A stretch of DNA of 64,000 bases, taken from Lepidodermella squamata (Eukaryota > Animalia > Gastrotricha). Every line of letters begins with the position of its first letter. Position 1 is the stretch's first letter. A program made the position numbers and the translations under genes. Under the pieces are notes generated by a model that was given only the letters and a program-made list of their open reading frames with translations, searched no databases and was not told where the DNA came from. Below, piece after piece: positions 1 through 54,105 of the stretch. The stretch covers positions 372,001 to 436,000 of the forward strand of contig JBLDXI010000009.1 of NCBI GenBank assembly GCA_047495785.1, given 5' to 3'.

Positions 1-2250
1 CGTGGGCATAAAGGCGAGCCAACCCCGTACGGGAACAAATTAGGAAAAGCCTTGATAAAAAATTCGGCGTCACGTTCATTTTGGAAGACGTTCGATGATG
101 TCACACGAAAACGTTTTAGATTTTCGCCGTCTTTGATTTCATCAACTTTTTCGACATCAGGTTGCCGGCCTTGCGATGTGTTGACATCAAATAAACCAGA
201 ATGAGTTTCTAACAATCCACCTTCATCTAAACCGCTATTCACGCGAATCGATTCTGCGCTGATGTCACCCATGATTTCTTCGCCATCATTCAAAATCGTA
301 GTCAAATCCAACCTTTCATCATCTTCAGGTAATGCATTGAGCGCAACATCATCAATGGGAATCATTTTGAACGATTTGTTGTTTTGTTTCAAGAACATCA
401 TGAAGTCACGCACCAATTCTCGCCGAACACGAACGTATTTTTGTTTGGCAATCTAACCATACAAGTCAAATATGAAATAAATCTCCAAAATTTCACAAAT
501 TTTACCTTCATGTCATCGTCAGTAGCATTCGCGAAAACAACAAGGTAATCTTTATCTTCCAAAGCCATGGGCATTTGTGTAGCAGCAGGACCGGGAGTAG
601 CGACAAGAGCAATCGTGTGGCTACGTAATTGTCTGCGTAAATTTCGACCGATTATTTGAATGTTCGCAGCAATTTGAACGAGCGATGTCATCTTTCGTTC
701 CGCCCAAGACAATGACGAAAATTGTTCCGGCAATCTCCCAAACGCCCATCCATTTGCTATTGCCATCACAGGCGGCGTTTTTATGCTAGAAGAGCAAAGC
801 GAGTCGTAACAATGCTTGCAAAACTGCATGGAAGTTCCTTCTGCACTGTTCGAAACGCCTGCAGGATTCAAAGCGAGGCCGGCTAATCGTTCGTCAATAT
901 CCTTCGCGCAGTATTCCTGACGCACACTGCTAGGAATGGAATCGGCCCAACGCAATCGAGACAATCGGTTGTAGATAAACGACTGCTCCAGGATTTTCGT
1001 AATGATGTCTCGTTTTGGTACTAGTTCCTGACAGACAGCGCACACCGTTTCAGTCAAATTATCCGCCGAGAAGAAGTCCTTGATTTTGTTGACTGCATTT
1101 TCTTTCTTGAAATCAGAGATTGCTTCGAACACTCGCATGCTTGAATCGACATCGGCATCGGGTAAATCCTCCGGCTGAACCGTTTCCTATGAATAATTTT
1201 GTTTTCCCTTAAACGTTTCTCCAATTGTTCAAGCTGATTACCTTGACCTCGTATATATCTTCACTATAACAAGGTGTATCCTCGGCAATAAATAAATTGC
1301 GTGATTGAGACTTAGAGCCTGATTGTGCTTTTGGCGTCGTTGTCCCTGTCACTGTAGATTGTGAAGACTGCGGATGTTTTCCTACATAATAGTGAATAGC
1401 GAATGTGTATGCAGCACCATGGAGTAAATAGCCTACTTATTTCAGCGTCAACATCTTCGGCTTTCACCATTAAAGGTGTTTTCTTTATTTGATTCTCTGT
1501 TAGCAAGCCGCGCTCAATCAATCTCTTTGATTGCAAAGCAGATAAATGCAGCAATTCCATTCTTCCAAAGCACTGCTCTTTAAATTTGGACAGGGTTTCA
1601 AAACCGAACAATTTCATGGCAAAACAGGCGTGAAAATAAGCACCGATGCCTTCGACTTCGATTCGATTTGCATCCAATTGATCAATCTATCCGAATAATG
1701 TTAAATCAAGTTATTTTGCACTAAAGCCTACCATTTTCAATTTTAGAGGTGTCAAGCGCATTTCTGGCATAGCCTCTATTCTAGCAGGCCCAGACGGCGT
1801 TGAATGTCCAGTTGCGGATGATGAAGTCATAGGTCTTTTTACAACAAGGCTACCTCCTTCTACAAAACAACCACAGAATTAGAATAATTGTATCAATTAT
1901 AAAATGCATGCCTACCATTGTTAAAATCAAGCTGTCTTTTGCCACCCAAAACAGCTGGGCTTGCAAGGTCGATTCGCACAGGGAGTTTCGGAGGGGTCGA
2001 AAACATGCTTATGTTAACGGTAGGAATAGCCTTTCCGCTGTTCGATGGCAGTTGAACTGGAATTCTTGAAGGACTAGCCATACTAGCTGAAAACAGAGGT
2101 TTGCCAATTGAAGCAGCTTCTGTATTAGACATTTAGTTGAATCCAAACTAAGTAACAAGTAAAGTGTATAAACGTACGTGTAGTACGTGTGGAAACAACT
2201 TTGCGAAACTCAGGACCAGTATGATCACAGCTATTCGACCGCTGATTATT

Positions 2251-2323
2251 TGCTGAAGAAAAAATACTAGTGTCACTAAAAAATCTCCTTACAGCACTTA
2301 CGCCCTGGATTAGACTCGATGTC
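2251..2323 (-). other. 2A/StopGo-like ribosome-skipping motif (CG-DIESNPG|P), last codon split by a 49-nt intron
   Basis: Minus strand reads GAC ATC GAG TCT AAT CCA GGG C|gtaagt...ttttttcttcag|CA AAT AAT (intron 2301-2253). The spliced product is ILVCGDIESNPGPNNQ, matching the consensus D(V/I)ExNPGP. Confidence 0.75.
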
Positions 2324-2605
2324 GCCACAAACCAAAATAGAAAAAGTCACGGTTGATCTGCTAAATCTCCAGCGCAAACAATTACGGAAAACTTCTTTCG
2401 CAGCGAAATGATCAACCGCATCAACCCAATCGCCCCATGGTTCATACAGAGCTTCACTCAATACCTTCTGTCTTCCTTGATACCACGTTGAATCGTTTCT
2501 CAGCAAACTTATAATAACAAAAACCAAAACAGTTGCTGGCAGTCGCTTCATCGGAAATAAACTAGGAAAAAACATAAAATAGAACTCATGCATGTATGGA
2601 TGATG

Positions 2606-2845
2606 TGAATGATGCGTATAGTTATGATCATGGCAGTTTTCACCCAGATCAGGGTTTGGCTGTCGTTTACGGTTGACTTCGGTATCATACGGCTGTACAT
2701 AGGCCGCTGAAAAGCGTTGTTGCCATGAATGATGCGTATAGTTATGATCATGGCAGTTTTCACCCAGATCAGGGTTTGGCTGTCGTTTACGGTTGACTTC
2801 GGTATCATACGGCTGTACATAGGCCGCTGAAAAGCGTTGTTGCCA
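2606..2845. repeat. Perfect 120-bp tandem duplication
   Basis: 2606-2725 is identical to 2726-2845. It duplicates 40 codons in frame within ORF 2887-2276. Confidence 0.97.
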
Positions 2846-3519
2846 AGAACCAGAAACAATTTTGAAATCAGCGCCAGTTCTTGACATTAAAATAATGTTT
2901 AATATTAAAAATTATTTTTTATTCTATAATATAACTTTTTTTAGTATTTTACAACTCCCCCCGGCCGACCAAATTTCCCTGCTTTACATCCGGTTCGGGT
3001 TGTTCCAACCCTCCCGGATTCATAGGAAATACTGGAACGGCTCTAGCCGAGCCGCAATCTGGGTTCGAAGAAACGGGAAATCCACAGGTCCCTGTGCAGC
3101 CTTCGTCTTTTGTCTTTTGAGAGTGAGCTGCTCCCTAGTCGTTGTTTCACGAGGTAGGTAGTTGTGCTCTCAGCTCGCCATGCCCAACCCATACCCCCAA
3201 GCCATCCCCAAAATTGGGAAACCCAACTCCAAATTTCGAGCATTATAGCATTATATTTTTAAACTTTTGAAATCAATTTTTATACTCCATTTCGCCAATA
3301 CCCACCTCAAAAGAATAGATAAGTCCTTGATCAAATGGACCACGGTTCTTGTGCAAAAGGTATATCTCCGATCGATGGCGCAATGACTTTTGCTTGCAAT
3401 CAACGCTGCCATCGTAGGAGCAAGACGCCTTCACGTTCCTCTTTGTGACCGTAGCGTGCTGAGCAAAATATCCATGACTCCTGAGATGCGTGCTCTTACA
3501 CGTCAGAAACGCGTTCTTG

Positions 3520-46983: not shown

Positions 46984-49900
46984 TTAGGCCTGAAAAAGAG
47001 AAAATTTTGTTAGAATAAATGATAACATCAACATCTATATGATAAGTACCTGACTGTTATTAACAGGCGTCTCGTTATTTGTGCCGCTATCATCTCTGGA
47101 TTGGGCACCTCTTACGACGAATTCTCGTATAGCAGCAACGGCGTTATTTGGGCTGAGAAAGGCACTGTCCAGTATTCTCAAATTATGCGAATTAGCAGCA
47201 TTAGGTTGAGAAGATGGAGAATCGAATGGGCGATTGGCTGCCAGCAAGTTAAATGCGGACCTCGATGAATTGAACAATGTCTGAGCACTGGAGTTGGCCG
47301 CCATAGCAAGTTGAGATCTGCCATCCATTTGACGCATCAGATGCTCATTGTTAGATAATACAGTAGCTATCGGTACATCAAAGTAGAATCCCCAATTATC
47401 CTCTCGATCAACGTAGTTAGGGATCTGTTCTCCGGAATTGAATGTCGCCAAGGGATTAGATGTGAAATAGCCTCCAATAGCCTGGACGAGATTATGAGCC
47501 GAAAATTTCGTCATTTCGACATTCCCTATCTTAGAGTCTGTTATAGTGACTTCACCCCTTTCAGAGCCTATTATGGTTCTCATCGGCTCGTCAGAGCCAC
47601 CTGTAACCCGGCTCGACATCAGATCTACTCCGTCACGGCCCTGAATTGTAGTGCTTCCACTTTCGGTGGAAATGCCTGAGTCAACGGCTGTCACGGTGCC
47701 CCCAGCTATGATTGAGGTTTGCTGGCCTCCTGCTACATTGGATTTATCCATTGAAATATTATTCGATGCTGTGACATTGAGAGACCGGCCCGAGGTCAAA
47801 TGAGCACCTGAGAGTGTTATATTCTGACCGGATTGAAGACTCGAGTCGGCACTCGGTCCATTAGCCGCTATGACATTGAATGATCGTTCACTGCTCTCCT
47901 GCCATTGACGGCTGTACTCCCACATACCACCAAACCATTTCGTTGTCTGTTGAGTCGTCGTCGTCTTCTCGACATCTTGCATTTTAACGCCACCGGCAGC
48001 TTGAACATTGAAGCCGTCCGCCGCTTTTATATTCGCAGATGTGTTCTGAACTTGATTGCCAGCTCGAACTGCGAAAAATCCATCTGTTTCAACATTAGCA
48101 CCAGCAACTCTTGTTTCCCAAGTGGTTGTAGACGTTTCTCCAAACCAAGTCTTTTCGTCTGTTTTACTGGCTACAGCTTGATAAGAATCAGCCTCCAATC
48201 GGACGTCTCCTTTCGCGGCGTTCACCAAAACATCTCCTCCAGCTTTGACGTTGGTACTTCTGAGAACAATCGATCCATCCTCGCTTTCGATTATAACTCC
48301 CAAATTTCGGGTGACGTTGCGCCTAGTTTCGGTCCCAACACTCTTTTCAACGGCTTCGTATGGTCTACCTCCTCCAGCCTGAACAGAAGTGCTGAGAAGT
48401 GATTGCTCGCTGCCGCCATTCATGCCTTGAATAGAAACATCCCTTTGAGCACTCAGGATTATACCCTTATCACCGGTAAGTTTTGATGCTGTCAAATTCA
48501 CGTTGCCTTGATCGCTTCGAATGCCAACTTGACCATTAGCTGCATCAATCTTCGCTTGATCCAGGCTGACATTGCCTCTTGCATGAATAACGACATCCCC
48601 AGACGCAGAAGCTGCATTCGAGTTGTTATTCATCGTAACGTCACCGCCATTTGACAGGAGAGCCACTCCTTGGAGGCCTGTAACTGAGGCTTGGGACCCG
48701 ATGGTAACGCCACCACTTTTAGCCATAAGAACAGCTTTTCCCGCCTCTGCTGAGACTGAAACGCTGTCGGCAAGATTGACGGCATTGTTTGCAACGAGCC
48801 GAACATCTCCAGTTGTGGCAGAAATATTGGCCTGAACGTCAACTGAGTTGGCGTAAATCCCAATACCATGTTTCATTTGTAGCAGCCGGTCAATGATAAC
48901 GGTCTGGTTCGGAATCTCCAAGTTTAACGCTTGTGTCACCTGCAGCTTCGAATAGCCGTTGGTTCGATAGAGAATGGCTTCAAGATTTTCAAGATTTTTC
49001 TCAGCTCTGATGTCCAACTTTCCGAAAACCTGATCAGCTACAGTATCAAGATTAACAGTATCCGCGTGAACCTGGGCATGAGCAACATTCATCGAACCGC
49101 CCAGGGTTGCTGTAGATGAACCTTGGACTTTCAAATAATCAGCGGTTACCCCTCGAGCGGAAGAAACGTCGCCTTGAATGAAAATTCTCTCAGCCTTGGA
49201 ATCGGATACCGATGCTTGACCTTGAGCCGTCGCAGCAATTTCACGAGTAGCGGACGAGTCTGAGATGAAGGCATTTCCAGAAGAACTGCTGGCGATAATA
49301 CCCGCAGCTTGATTAATCCCTGCCACCCTGGCGCCAGACGCGCCCGATGCGCTCACTGTGGCAGATGACGATGAGTTTGTGATGGAAGCAAAGCCTTTCT
49401 GTGAAATAGCTTCAATTTGCCCACCTTGCTGACGCGTGATGAAGACATTATTGTCAGCAACTGCTTTCAAGCTTTGAGAAGCATCGTTATCGTGGGCAAC
49501 AACTGAGGCCCCCTGCAGCTGAATGTTGCTGGCTTCCAGCCCATGAACATGAAGGTCTGTCTTAGCCGACGCGGAGATGAAATCAGCTTTTGAATCGAAA
49601 ACATTGGCACTGCCGGAATCAGCAGTAACAAGCAGCTTGGATTTCGCAAATGAATCTGATACAAGTGCATTGCCGTTATTTTGAACAATCGCTCTGAAAT
49701 CGCCATAGGCCATGATATTTCGAGCAACAAGATTGTCAGCTGCAAGACGGACATTATCTGCCGCCATTATCTGGCCCGTTGTCTCCAAATATCGAGCACT
49801 TACTATGACATCCATAGCGGCCAGAATTCTGCCATGATTCGTGAAAGAACCTCCAACGTAATCCGCCATGTAAGATCCTGCTGCCAGGACCATGCCGTCA

Positions 49901-52900
49901 TTATGTCCATAGAAGCCACGATCAGTAACACTGAATCCAACTCGAAGCCCTTCGTTCATGGAAAAGATTGACGTTTCGTTGAGTGACGGCAGGAGGTAGT
50001 TTCCAGCCAATAAGTACGCAGCCTTTCCAATATCAACCGCGTCGATTTCATACCCGGTCGGTACCTGCTCCAGGTAAGAGTTATTGAGTACAACGCCTTG
50101 GTGGATTTCCCGCACTCCAGCATCGAAAATTGTGTAAGCTGACACGCAATCCACGACAATTCCAATTATATCGGTCAGCTGAATAGGCATGTCTACGATG
50201 CCATTTTCCCGAATCTGCTGAACCATAGCTTTGATCTTGACAACCAGAGTGAAGAAAGTTTTGAATAACCCAAGCAACATTAGACCAGCCTGAGCAATCA
50301 TGACAGCGGCTCGAGCTTGCGGTGGCAGAATTTGTTGTAGGGTGGTCAACAAACAGTTCACAATATGAACTGGATTTTTGAGGAGCTCTTTGGTCGGAAG
50401 AGTAGGCAAGGCTGCGTGTAGTAGCTCAATCTTGATGATAGCTCTTATGAATCGCGAAAAAGACAAGGTCACGCCGACAAGCAGAAGCGAGATGATTCCG
50501 CTTATGTTCAACAAAGGTGCGTGAATTACACCCAGGTTGACGAAGCACAGACAGGTGACGGAAAAGGTATTCCATGCGAAAATTGCTCCGACGTTGACAG
50601 CTATCACCTGAATCGCCATTTGTATGTTGGCAGATCTTGCCGCGGCAAGAAGATTAGCGAACACCCATGCGTTAACATTAAGCGATCGGCTAGCTTCGAT
50701 GTCCTTTGTCACGGCGAAAATTACAATCTTCGCTTTCACAACTAGGTCCTTGCAGTGAACCTTTCCGCGGATGATGATCATTGGAAAAACAGTCAGCATT
50801 TCCTTGAGGTTTTTACCAAACTGCTTCAATTTGCTCTCTTCTTCTGCAGAGAACTTGTCTGGAGGTTTCTCTCCGTCGCCTGGAGTTTTGACTGGGGCTT
50901 TCTTTCGTTCCAACTTTCCAGCTTTTAAAATTAGGCCCTTCTGACAGTCAATAGCACCTTTCTTGGTTACCTTCAGGGACTTAATCGCATGAACCGACAA
51001 GCTTTGGCAGTTGATATTGCCAGAAATCTTGAACTTTAGTGTAACAACGGCGACGTCACATTCCGCGCATTCAATCAGCCCTTTGATGACCGTTTTGCCA
51101 TCGTCGCACATAAGCATCAAGTTCTTGGTGGCGTCAACAGATATGACGTAGCCATGTAGTTCCAAGCTCTCCATTCCAGCGATAAAAATACTTTGCTTCG
51201 GAGGTTTTTTGGCCAGTGCGGCCTTTTCCATGGCAAGTTTGCTGAGATTCGGCATGAAAGTTTGCACAAATGGGTCTCCGAAAAACGCAGACGCCGCATA
51301 CATAGCAAATTTCTTGCTTTTCTTCAGCTTGGGTTTCTCACATGCAGGGCTCTGGTCTTTTTCGTTATGAGTTGATTCTTTAGAATCACATGATATTGGA
51401 GAGCCAAGTATCAGTCTAGACGTTTCACTGCATAACATGGTTTTGCAGATGATATTGCCGCTTGGTAAAGAAACTGATCCATGGCACTCAAACCGGCCGG
51501 ATTTCATCTTCAAGGTTCCATTGAAACTTGCAAAAGCTCCTTGTTCGACAAATAGAATACTCAGTTCATTGAAAAGAGGAGCTGAGTGGAATAAGGCATG
51601 AAGGCCCTGGCTCAAGCGCAGTTCGGTCACATCCCAAATCACGACTTTTTGAGCTTCGATCGTGTTGACGCTCATTGAAAGACTAGCGACATTTTCCAGA
51701 ACAAGCTCGTGCACAATAAGGCTGCCTGATCCGACAAGACTAATCGACGTATTCGGGGAGGCCGCCAGAATTTTCAGCTGGCCAATAACAACATTGCCGT
51801 TAAAGGCGATCTCCGCAGGTCGCTCTTCATTTGTTCCTCCTAGCACCCCCATTTCGCATTTTCCAAGGAAAACGTCCTTGGTGAACTTCAAGCTAGAACC
51901 AGTCACAAATCGTGCGACTCCCTGTTTGCCCAAGTCAATTGGACAAGATGTGATCAGCTCGCCATCTTTGCATCCGAGTTGAGCAAAAATTAGCAGTGGC
52001 TGCAATTCTTGTCCGAGTTTGATATTCAGCTTCAACCGCGATGAATTGTACGCTTTCACAATTAATCCACGGCTTGATTCCATTGTGCCGCTCACCTTCG
52101 TGTCGCCATGATCATATAGCTCAACGTAAATGCTGTCGGATTTGCTCGTCAGACGGCCGTAGTAGTTGTCCAGCCTTCTGGCTATCACCCGGATCGGGCC
52201 GTCTGATTCGAAATTGCCATCATTAATCACAGTTGCCGCGCAACCGACTGTCAAAGAGCTATGGCCGAGCAAACTTGCGGATTTGAAAAATTCTAGATCT
52301 TCTTTAGCTGCGATGATGAGGTTGTCGGCAGTGAGCCGGCCACTGTTTTTAATCGAGGATCCGCCGCGAATCATTAGGTTTGTTGCCTCGACCCGAGATC
52401 TATTCTTTAGTTCAAGCCCCTTCACAGCACTGATTTCCAGCTGGTCACCAAAGATAGAAGCGTCTTTTTCAAGAGCGAAAGTTCCTGAACATTTCAGCGA
52501 ACTCATCTTCGCCAATCTCATAGTGCATGAAGGATGCAGAGAGATCGCCTCGCCAACATGGAAAACCAGAGACTTGGCTTCCCCGGTAGTGGCGATGGAT
52601 CCTTTTTGATCCCAGTGACCTTCGACTAGCAGGCGAAAGTTCGTTTCCCCTGGCTCAAGGCTGAGAATACTACCCGGTTCTGATTTTAACTCACGGCAAG
52701 ACAGTATAAATAACTTTGTTGAAGAATTAGGACGAGGTGATAGATGAACACGGCTTCCTTTTAAAAGCCGCAGGCAAGAATTTGGAGCGGTAAGTGCATC
52801 CGTAAATTTGGCTTCATTCGATTGAATAATCAACTCAGAATAGCCCGAAGCCTGGGAATTTTTGATAATGGCAGCAGTGAAGGGTCCGTTTAAATGAATC

Positions 52901-54105
52901 GGGCTGCTAAAAGTTAATGCAGCGCCGCTTTTCGCCCGAACCGTCATCTGCTTAGCAGTAACTTTGGCGTTGTACGCAACTCGAACGGCAGATGTTTCAT
53001 AATCGAACTTTTCAACGTTGAAACTACCATCAACGACAGAATCTTCCTCTGATTTAGTAGCCAGCTTCAAGCTGCCATCAGGGCAGATGAATCCAGCAGT
53101 CGAATCTTGCACGAATTGACTGGTTGAAATACTCAACAGGCCAGCCCATTTGAAAACCGATGACCGATTGTGAAAGACGTTCCTTACAGCTAAGGATCCT
53201 CCAAGTCGTATTGATAAATTAGCAGATGGCTCAATGACGAAATCGTTTGCGCTAAAATTATCGATCCTATCCCATAAAAGCTTCCCGGCAAGAGTTGCAC
53301 GACCGACTACAACGCCGGTAACATTACCAGACGACCAGTCGCTCCCAGGACGCAGGTCAAGATTTCCTTCAATGTTCAGATTTGCTGTCATCCCTTTAGC
53401 GGCATTTGGCTGTCTAGTTATGCTACCTGATTTTGACAAGATGAAATGTTGGCATTTTTTCACAACGAATTCCTCGCCGACAGCAATAACGCCGTCAATA
53501 TTCAAATCTTCAACACTTTCGAGTGAGGCTTTTTGGCATGAGATGCGCCCACCCTCAGAGATCTTTATCGATTCAGCCGATCCTATGACAAGTCCGGCAC
53601 AAGTTACAGCAGAATTCTTGAGAAGATGTGTAGGTCCTTCGCTTGAGATTAGATTTAATTTGTTAACAGCGCATGACGATACTTTTAAGGAGGGCGCTGA
53701 GACGGCGAGTCGACTCGAAGGTTCGTTCACAGCAGTTATATGTAAAATTAGAGGAGCCATCTTTGAGCATTCAATTAATAAGTTTAAAGGCGAGGCGCTT
53801 TTCGATTGTAAACACATTTGAACGGTATTCCCGTGTTTGTTTGCTGACCACGCTGCTTTACCCAGTAGTTCCAGCGATGAGTTTGCATAATGTAGTCCGC
53901 TGATAATCTGGCCATTTGCCGCATCGTCCAAATCTACATTGAACTCGGCGTCAATAGGAAAACCAAGTTGTTGCAGCTGAGAAAAGACGAGTTGCCGAGA
54001 GAAGTCGATCGATGCTCTTGAGGCAGATTTTTCGGCTGAATTTGGATTCGGTTCAAAGTTTGGTTTAGGAGGTGGCTTCGGGGGCCCATCTGATTTAGTA
54101 GCCAT
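46984..54105 (-). CDS. Giant filamentous-haemagglutinin/CdiA-like repeat protein (~2350 aa) with a central hydrophobic region
   Basis: 7056-nt uninterrupted exon 54105-47050, plus a probable 60-nt terminal intron and a GCC TAA exon. Beta-helix-like repeats 'IKNSGRLTADNL', 'VINDGNFES', 'LDNYYGRL', and 'GGDVLVNAAKGDVRLEA...KTWFG', 'LQSGQNITLSGAHLTSG'. The ORF is certain; the family call is from motif resemblance. Confidence 0.7.

Follow-up and report, generated by a model that had tools for sequence, protein, structure and literature searches.

A 2A (StopGo) motif that a predicted splice would complete at the head of a Helitron transposase gene in the gastrotrich Lepidodermella squamata

Can a translational recoding signal exist only in a spliced mRNA, and can a DNA transposon carry one? 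The question is raised by a Helitron, a rolling-circle transposon, on the minus strand of a 64,000-nucleotide stretch of the Lepidodermella squamata genome (assembly GCA_047495785.1, contig JBLDXI010000009.1, positions 372,001 to 436,000; hereafter the window, C9:372001-436000). The Rep-helicase gene of this element appears to open with a 2A, or StopGo, motif whose last codon is interrupted by a short intron. 2A/StopGo has been documented in RNA viruses, in non-long-terminal-repeat (non-LTR) retrotransposons and in a few cellular genes (PMC3708506, PMC4981915, 10.64898/2026.09.24.754024). A 2026 preprint describes it as rare in the genomes of cells and, for mobile elements, lists only reverse-transcribing ones (10.64898/2026.09.24.754024). 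An earlier note, made from the letters of the window, had described the split motif, and its claims were followed up across the 121-Mb, 151-contig assembly.

The open reading frame (ORF) that starts at ATG 2887-2885 of the minus strand reads to ...FSILVCGDIESNPG, with its last Gly codon at 2305-2303. The tail of exon 1 is CGDIESNPG followed by a single C (2302), directly after which comes the donor GTAAGT (2301-2296). Intron 1 is AT-rich and has a polypyrimidine tract leading up to a CAG acceptor at 2255-2253, and exon 2 opens with C2252 and A2251. Removal of these 49 nt joins C2302 to C2252-A2251 as CCA, a Pro codon split in phase 1, and the product reads GDIESNPGP. GDIESNPG is contiguous in the DNA, and the Pro is supplied only by the 49-nt-intron splice model; in the unspliced frame the protein runs NPGRKCCKEIF and then stops (ORF 2276..2887). 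Each part of what the earlier note had described here was found again on the minus strand. The pattern D[VI]ExNPG, with or without the attached C+GTAAGT, matched once in the window and not at all in 100 shuffles, well above the chance level. Both the 2A core and the splice signals that would complete it are present in the sequence. The residues RSTVTFSILVC that precede GD are hydrophobic, like those of many active 2As, and such context matters for skipping in screens. In its hydrophobic character and its CGD ending, this tract is similar to active 2As, T2A among them.

The gene beyond the motif (Table 1) was modelled by enumerating the GT-AG solutions at each junction and taking those with the best consensus. 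A dynamic-programming gene model was discarded as too greedy, given that it favoured 40-nt introns and overran the real gene end. The adopted model has 11 introns, ten of 45-62 nt and one of 133 nt, with GC contents of 0.19-0.40 against ~0.45 in the exons; intron 4 is the sole GT-AG solution at its junction, and intron 1, at 49 nt and a GC content of 0.33, fits the remaining modelled introns. In agreement with the earlier note, the spliced frame stays open downstream of the motif. From the first ATG it extends over at least 2181 amino acids, through exons 3-6, a stretch from the 2A to DUF6570 in which no domain was recognised, and then through DUF6570 (PF20209, E = 2e-08) and Helitron_like_N (PF14214) into a PIF1 helicase (PF05970, E = 4.5e-06 on one exon and 0.0015 on its neighbour). 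Rep (HUH) and the PIF1-type helicase are carried by one protein. Past the helicase and outside the window, a further region on the minus strand (L004:3056-4018) holds coding blocks of 76 and 244 amino acids with short introns and no Pfam match at E < 0.01.

Constraint on the spliced frame was assessed by comparing the copy in the window, on contig C9, with its relatives on contig C54. Downstream of the 2A, 9 synonymous and 5 non-synonymous changes separate the C9 and C54 copies, corresponding to a ratio of non-synonymous to synonymous rates (dN/dS) of ~0.16 (binomial P = 0.0009). Changes per base are ~3-fold higher in introns than in exons (P = 0.04), and exon 2 has a single indel, of 3 nt and in frame. 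The spliced frame is under purifying selection. Given this, the C9 and C54 lineages diverged under selection on the modelled protein, which is the behaviour of an active autonomous element.

The element spans 10.6 kb, from window position 3023 down to C9:364391, with its 3' end outside the window, and is present in three genomic copies that are ~99.5% identical, one on C9 and two in tandem on C54. The C54 copies (C54:3271108-3292000) lie head-to-tail with a period of 10.8 kb and a unique 299-nt spacer, an arrangement that suggests read-through or tandem rolling-circle products. With regard to insertion between T and T, the C9 copy is flanked by T on both sides; the first C54 copy has T at its 5' flank and, after its 3' end, G and then the 299-nt spacer. 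The 18-nt terminal inverted repeat of the 5' end recurs exactly, in inverted orientation, at 26-43 nt from the 3' end and is followed by a palindrome with a 7-bp stem and then by TGCAGT. Group 2 Helitron-like elements (HLE2) encode Rep and PIF1 with DUF6570 and are bounded by short terminal inverted repeats, the right one being followed by a 3' stem-loop (PMC11417382). The element was assigned to this group because its repeats, its 3' stem-loop and its DUF6570, Helitron_like_N and PIF1 domains match that description, and the rolling-circle Rep-helicase of the earlier note is thereby upheld. No Exo_endo_phos match was found in nine long coding blocks scanned from Rep onward. The Helentron variant was set aside, as its APE-type endonuclease domain was not found in those blocks, and the element was filed as Helitron2-type on this ground. 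A non-LTR retrotransposon with an N-terminal 2A was also considered and rejected, since the domains found downstream of the 2A are DUF6570, Rep and PIF1 and no others. The element is an autonomous rolling-circle transposon of the Helitron2 (HLE2) type and has been active recently. Relative to the Helitron2 and Helentron elements of the HELIANO paper (PMC11417382), it is alike in Rep and PIF1 with DUF6570, in its terminal inverted repeats and in its 3' stem-loop; it differs in that the endonuclease domain is undetected, and the accessory domains surveyed there mention no 2A or leader module.

The leader that precedes the 2A was only partly as the earlier note had drawn it. What is common to all three copies is an 84-amino acid leader that opens with Met-Lys-Arg, continues into a hydrophobic segment (~2501-2557; Kyte-Doolittle 19-residue peak of 1.74) and ends in CGDIESNPG. 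The hydrophobic stretch stands, but the length of 195 amino acids and the His-rich repeat belong to the C9 copy only, the repeat being an exact 120-bp tandem duplication (2606-2849) that is absent from both C54 copies. Two overlapping frames are both open across this duplication, and the copies differ in the frame that feeds the 2A. A T-run at 2567-2572 has 6 T in the C9 copy and 7 T in both C54 copies; contigs from a public sequencing run carry both alleles at a depth of ~2:1, as expected for two copies versus one. The extra T of the C54 copies closes the first-ATG frame just after the run, and there the 2A frame is entered either from another upstream frame or from the ATG at 2551. The leader has no Pfam family, no paralogue in the genome at E <= 1 and no ESM Atlas neighbour, and no existing record matches its exact ORF. 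A role in membrane targeting is predicted for it.

Across the whole assembly, D[VI]ExNPG gave 18 matches, against none in a reversed control. Three are this Helitron, two look like chance and 13 stand directly before Pro. These 13 unsplit NPGP sites sit in repeats behind hydrophobic leaders, and two of the repeat families are non-LTR retrotransposons by Pfam; in one family the motif is followed by an APE endonuclease, in another by C2H2 fingers together with a reverse transcriptase. The APE-bearing non-LTR element (C33, C55; L018/L023) has a leader of ~440 amino acids with many hydrophobic segments, then CGDIESNPGP, then Cys-rich fingers that look PHD-like by eye, and then the endonuclease, and the codons of its 2A core are nearly those of the Helitron core. 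Other repeats (C7, C10, L011/L013; L008/L015/L019) carry DIETNPGP or DIEMNPGP behind a multi-segment hydrophobic leader. Zinc fingers of the C2H2 type and a reverse transcriptase come next, and the part of the locus examined has no APE domain; such repeats may represent a 2A-bearing retroelement of the non-APE type. Unsplit DVEMNPGP or DVEHNPGP occurs behind hydrophobic leaders in a further set (L009/L016/L020/L024/L025 and L014), of which L009, the sole member tested, showed no Pfam family.

Split motifs were found as well. Three families of P-element-type transposases, 44-57% identical just past the motif, carry a 2A in which a 53-64-nt intron falls between D and V, the head reading ...LLL(Q/R)(C/S)GD / intron / (V/I)(E/Q)xNPGP. 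The loci are C25, C46 (L056/L057), C66 (L058) and C29 (L060), with further sites on C24 and C60. Their upstream exons encode hydrophobic, membrane-like leaders, and two of the three families have Gln for the key Glu (DIQLNPGP, DVQSNPGP). At L060 on C29, the single locus where the frame was traced, the motif exon runs directly into the transposase ORF. Genome-wide, AG-[VI][EQ]xNPGP gave 11 matches against none in the control. AG-[VI]ExNPGP sites of four further sequence types (IESNPGP, VERNPGP, IEANPGP), at C1:4939549, C4:1030187/C16:415168, C9:3393278 and C28:109310, resemble the D/V-split design. A search of the genome for the same split as in the Helitron (ExNPG + C + GTR) returned this element plus chance-level matches only.

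What these P-element heads have in common with the Helitron is a DNA transposase that follows leader exons of hydrophobic character and a 2A broken by a short intron. By contrast, the P-element intron falls between D and V, in phase 0, and the Helitron intron inside the final Pro codon, and no similarity was detectable between their leaders and that of the Helitron. Leader-2A heads are a recurrent design of mobile elements in this genome. Intron-split 2A heads on DNA transposases are a conserved design there, because three diverged P-element families keep the split motif and AG-[VI][EQ]xNPGP is found 11 times against none.

The answer that we consider probable for the Helitron is that splicing would assemble a functional 2A, which would separate the hydrophobic leader from a Pro-initiated Rep-helicase. 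One spliced mRNA would encode first a short hydrophobic leader with CGDIESNPG at its end and then the DUF6570-Rep-PIF1 transposase, and GDIESNPGP would be carried only by correctly spliced mRNA. The ribosome would skip the peptide bond at Gly-Pro, free the leader and go on with a Rep-helicase that starts with Pro (PNNQRS...), in parallel with the 2As that part N-terminal leaders from ORF2 in non-LTR retrotransposons. StopGo activity of the Helitron 2A is a prediction from its sequence. The earlier note had also proposed that splicing gates the transposase. Such a gate is not peculiar to intron 1, given that retention of any of the 11 introns would truncate the protein.

A number of observations weigh against the splice-assembled 2A and bear on rival explanations of the locus. 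A first group concerns the choice of donor. A second donor, GTAAGG, lies 9 nt downstream of the first and in frame, and its use would remove a 40-nt intron and give NPGRKCS, with the motif destroyed. The signals on which the earlier note had based its donor and acceptor were recovered, but it had left this in-frame alternative (T2293/GTAAGG) unmentioned. Donors in the gene are weakly conserved past GTA (GTAGGC, GTAATC, GTAAAA), and because of this degeneracy donor strength does not separate GTAAGT from GTAAGG. A search of public sequencing runs gave one run with DNA-like contigs and no RNA run, and no joined form occurred in those contigs. The choice of the 49-nt splice, and with it the use of the GTAAGT donor, is one that we infer.

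If the downstream donor were used instead, the protein would read ...ESNPGRKCSNNQ..., and the 2A would be a decayed or captured relic, with the leader staying fused or being only weakly released. The GTAAGG donor shares the acceptor of intron 1, fits GTAAG and, beside the degenerate donors elsewhere in the gene, is not obviously weaker. An intron of 40 nt would, however, be shorter than every other modelled intron, in the Helitron gene and the P-element genes alike (45-64 nt), and the perfect GTAAGT after NPG+C and the shared acceptor that restores Pro would be left as coincidence. The 49-nt form is favoured because its length is within range and because GTAAGT abutting NPG+C, with a Pro-restoring acceptor, would otherwise be an unexplained coincidence. 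We regard the relic as improbable.

Were both splices made, the final residue of the motif would matter. The earlier note had taken the Pro as required. This does not hold in cell-free extracts, where the final Pro is not absolutely required and many substitutions keep > 80% activity, but it retains force in cells, where with Arg at this position the upstream product is made and little or no downstream product is seen, partly through N-end-rule degradation (10.64898/2026.09.24.754024). It is conceivable, if quite doubtful, that donor choice at intron 1 serves as a transposase dosage switch and, more broadly, that this lineage evolved a general membrane-leader + 2A head. The 49-nt splice would give NPGP and a free, stable Rep-helicase starting with Pro; the 40-nt splice would give NPGR, with the upstream product released and, after the 2026 preprint, an Arg-starting downstream product degraded. 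The general head would be unsplit in the non-LTR retrotransposons, D/V-split in the P-element transposases and Pro-codon-split in the Helitron, and introns inside the motif of DNA transposons would tie transposase output to correct splicing.

A second group of contrary observations concerns whether leader and transposase are one gene. The N-terminal half of the leader differs in frame between copies, and translation from the ATG at 2130-2132, within intron 2, could yield a Rep-helicase that has no leader. The locus might then hold two coding units, with exon 1 a small upstream ORF ending NPGRKCCKEIF-stop and the Rep-helicase translated from ATG 2130-2132 (MSNTEAAS...) on the same or a shorter transcript, and the 2A-like motif would have no effect on the transposase. 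Both the unspliced ORF 2276..2887 and the ORF from 2132 exist, the absence of substitutions in exons 2-3 between copies leaves no test of coding constraint there, and the copies show clearly that the part of exon 1 before the T-run is under no frame constraint. Nevertheless, two units would require a canonical 2A, a perfect donor, a strong acceptor and a restored Pro to coincide, and would also have to explain an open exon 2 with a 3-nt in-frame indel and a good intron 2 that lands in the frame of exon 3. Furthermore, P-element genes of the same genome conserve split 2As that feed straight into the transposase. Little probability is therefore given to two separate units.

A third group concerns conservation and activity. 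The three copies are identical over the motif and intron 1, and for this reason they add no independent conservation of the motif. When the Rep exon was compared by HMMER with 1.84 billion representatives, the best relative was 32% identical, and a 2A was present in 0 of the top 150 relatives inspected; the conservation among homologous elements that the earlier note had looked for was not seen. Other Helitron families fetched from the genome are also without a 2A; apparent ESNPG matches in other Helitron loci we take to be tRNA-derived. The putative 2A head of this Helitron is a lineage-specific acquisition and not a family trait, because both the nearest 150 relatives and the other fetched Helitron families are without it. 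Two nearer fragments in the genome (39-53% identity) are Rep pieces only. A distant Helitron family at C9:1108001-1118000 (L037, minus strand; Rep 22% identical) has an intronless ORF of ~2180-2400 amino acids and an ordinary N-terminus without a 2A.

As to activity, a canonical core is no guarantee: a large screen found weak activity for many peptides that carry the motif, and 2As derived from retroelements or hosts were low on average (10.64898/2026.09.24.754024). It would follow that NPGP may form by splicing and yet have little StopGo activity in the host, the leader being an N-terminal extension or signal anchor of the Rep-helicase. Consistent with this, activity depends on the upstream tract, the retroelement and host-derived peptides were on average the lowest of that screen, and inactive 2A-like sequences are known in non-LTR elements (PMC3708506). 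Set against it are the core residues of the Helitron motif, all of which are canonical, and the several mobile-element families of this genome that keep canonical cores, a retention that suggests selection for activity. An inactive motif is on balance unlikely, and a splice-assembled, functional 2A continues to be the reading that we adopt.

Table 1. Features of the Helitron and its transposase gene, in window coordinates
Feature	Position	Strand	Basis
Element 5' end, with 18-nt terminal inverted repeat 3003-3020	3003..3023	-	BLAST copy boundaries, exact repeat
AT-rich stretch with TATA-like sequence, presumed promoter and 5' untranslated region	2888..2960	-	Read directly; promoter role presumed
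Variable 5' part of exon 1: first ATG 2885-2887, duplication, T-run	2552..2887	-	Copy comparison
Shared leader, ATG 2549-2551 (MKRLPATV...), to CGDIESNPG + C2302	2302..2551	-	Identical in three copies
Leader 3' end and 2A core codons G-D-I-E-S-N-P-G	2303..2326	-	Read directly
Intron 1, 49 nt, GTAAGT to TTTTTTCTTCAG, GC 0.33	2253..2301	-	Sequence-based splice model
Competing intron, 40 nt, donor T2293/GTAAGG, acceptor same as intron 1	2253..2292	-	In frame, gives NPGRKCS
Exon 2 (PNNQRSNSCDHTG...), 3-nt in-frame difference from other copies at 2229-2231	2178..2252	-	Junction enumeration, copy comparison
Intron 2, 58 nt, GTACGT...ACAG, holds ATG 2130-2132 in frame with exon 3	2120..2177	-	Junction enumeration
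Exons 3-6 (1916-2119, 1732-1859, 1437-1686, 1242-1381) and introns 3-6 (56, 45, 55, 55 nt)	1187..2119	-	Junction enumeration
Exon 7, encodes DUF6570	506..1186	-	Pfam PF20209, E = 2e-08
Exon 8 start, encodes Rep domain (Helitron_like_N); gene continues past the window into PIF1 helicase	1..452	-	Pfam PF14214, E = 2.9e-12; PF05970

Elsewhere in the window, an uninterrupted ORF of 2356 amino acids lies at 47035-54105 on the minus strand, with no Pfam family at E < 1e-4. Its lack of introns is unusual, as other genes in this genome have many short ones.

The Helitron 2A would probably be a recoding device of known type, in a class of host element that is new for it. The earlier note knew of no description of a splice-assembled 2A in a Helitron, and the literature search agreed with it: no paper was found that links a 2A-like sequence or NPGP to a Helitron, and none among the StopGo and transposase papers reported a natural 2A-headed transposase in its title or abstract. 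If the proposal is correct, the range of StopGo widens to include class II elements; the P-element transposases, with their split 2As, point the same way. These would be the first natural cases of a recoding signal that exists only in spliced mRNA, and splicing fidelity would be linked to how the transposase is made and perhaps to its place in the cell. For annotation, motif searches on genomic ORFs miss splice-assembled 2As.

2A-like sequences near the N-terminus of non-LTR retrotransposon ORFs were reportedly described by Heras in 2006. They are documented for the N-terminal part of these ORFs by Odon et al. (2013, PMC3708506), and with such elements the Helitron shares a canonical D(V/I)ExNPGP near the N-terminus of the element's main ORF, between a leader and an enzymatic protein. 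Unlike them, it is a rolling-circle DNA transposon without reverse transcriptase or APE, it has introns and the last codon of its motif is split. In cellular genes, N-terminal 2A-like signal sequences give dual targeting (Roulston et al. 2016, PMC4981915). The short N-terminal hydrophobic sequence before the 2A is common to both; the Helitron leader is longer (at least 84 amino acids), and it is followed by a transposase and ends in a splice-assembled motif. By analogy, a hydrophobic leader with a 2A could direct the product to membranes or secretion when skipping does not occur, and to the cytosol or nucleus when it does. Finally, GDIESNPGP is a classical 2A motif for which ~99% cleavage has been reported in several viruses (PMC8623073). 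Viral class A 2As, such as those of iflaviruses and cypoviruses, are contiguous in their RNA genomes and need no splicing, and the tract upstream of the Helitron core is unrelated to theirs, whereas the nonamer itself, once the 49-nt intron is removed, is identical.

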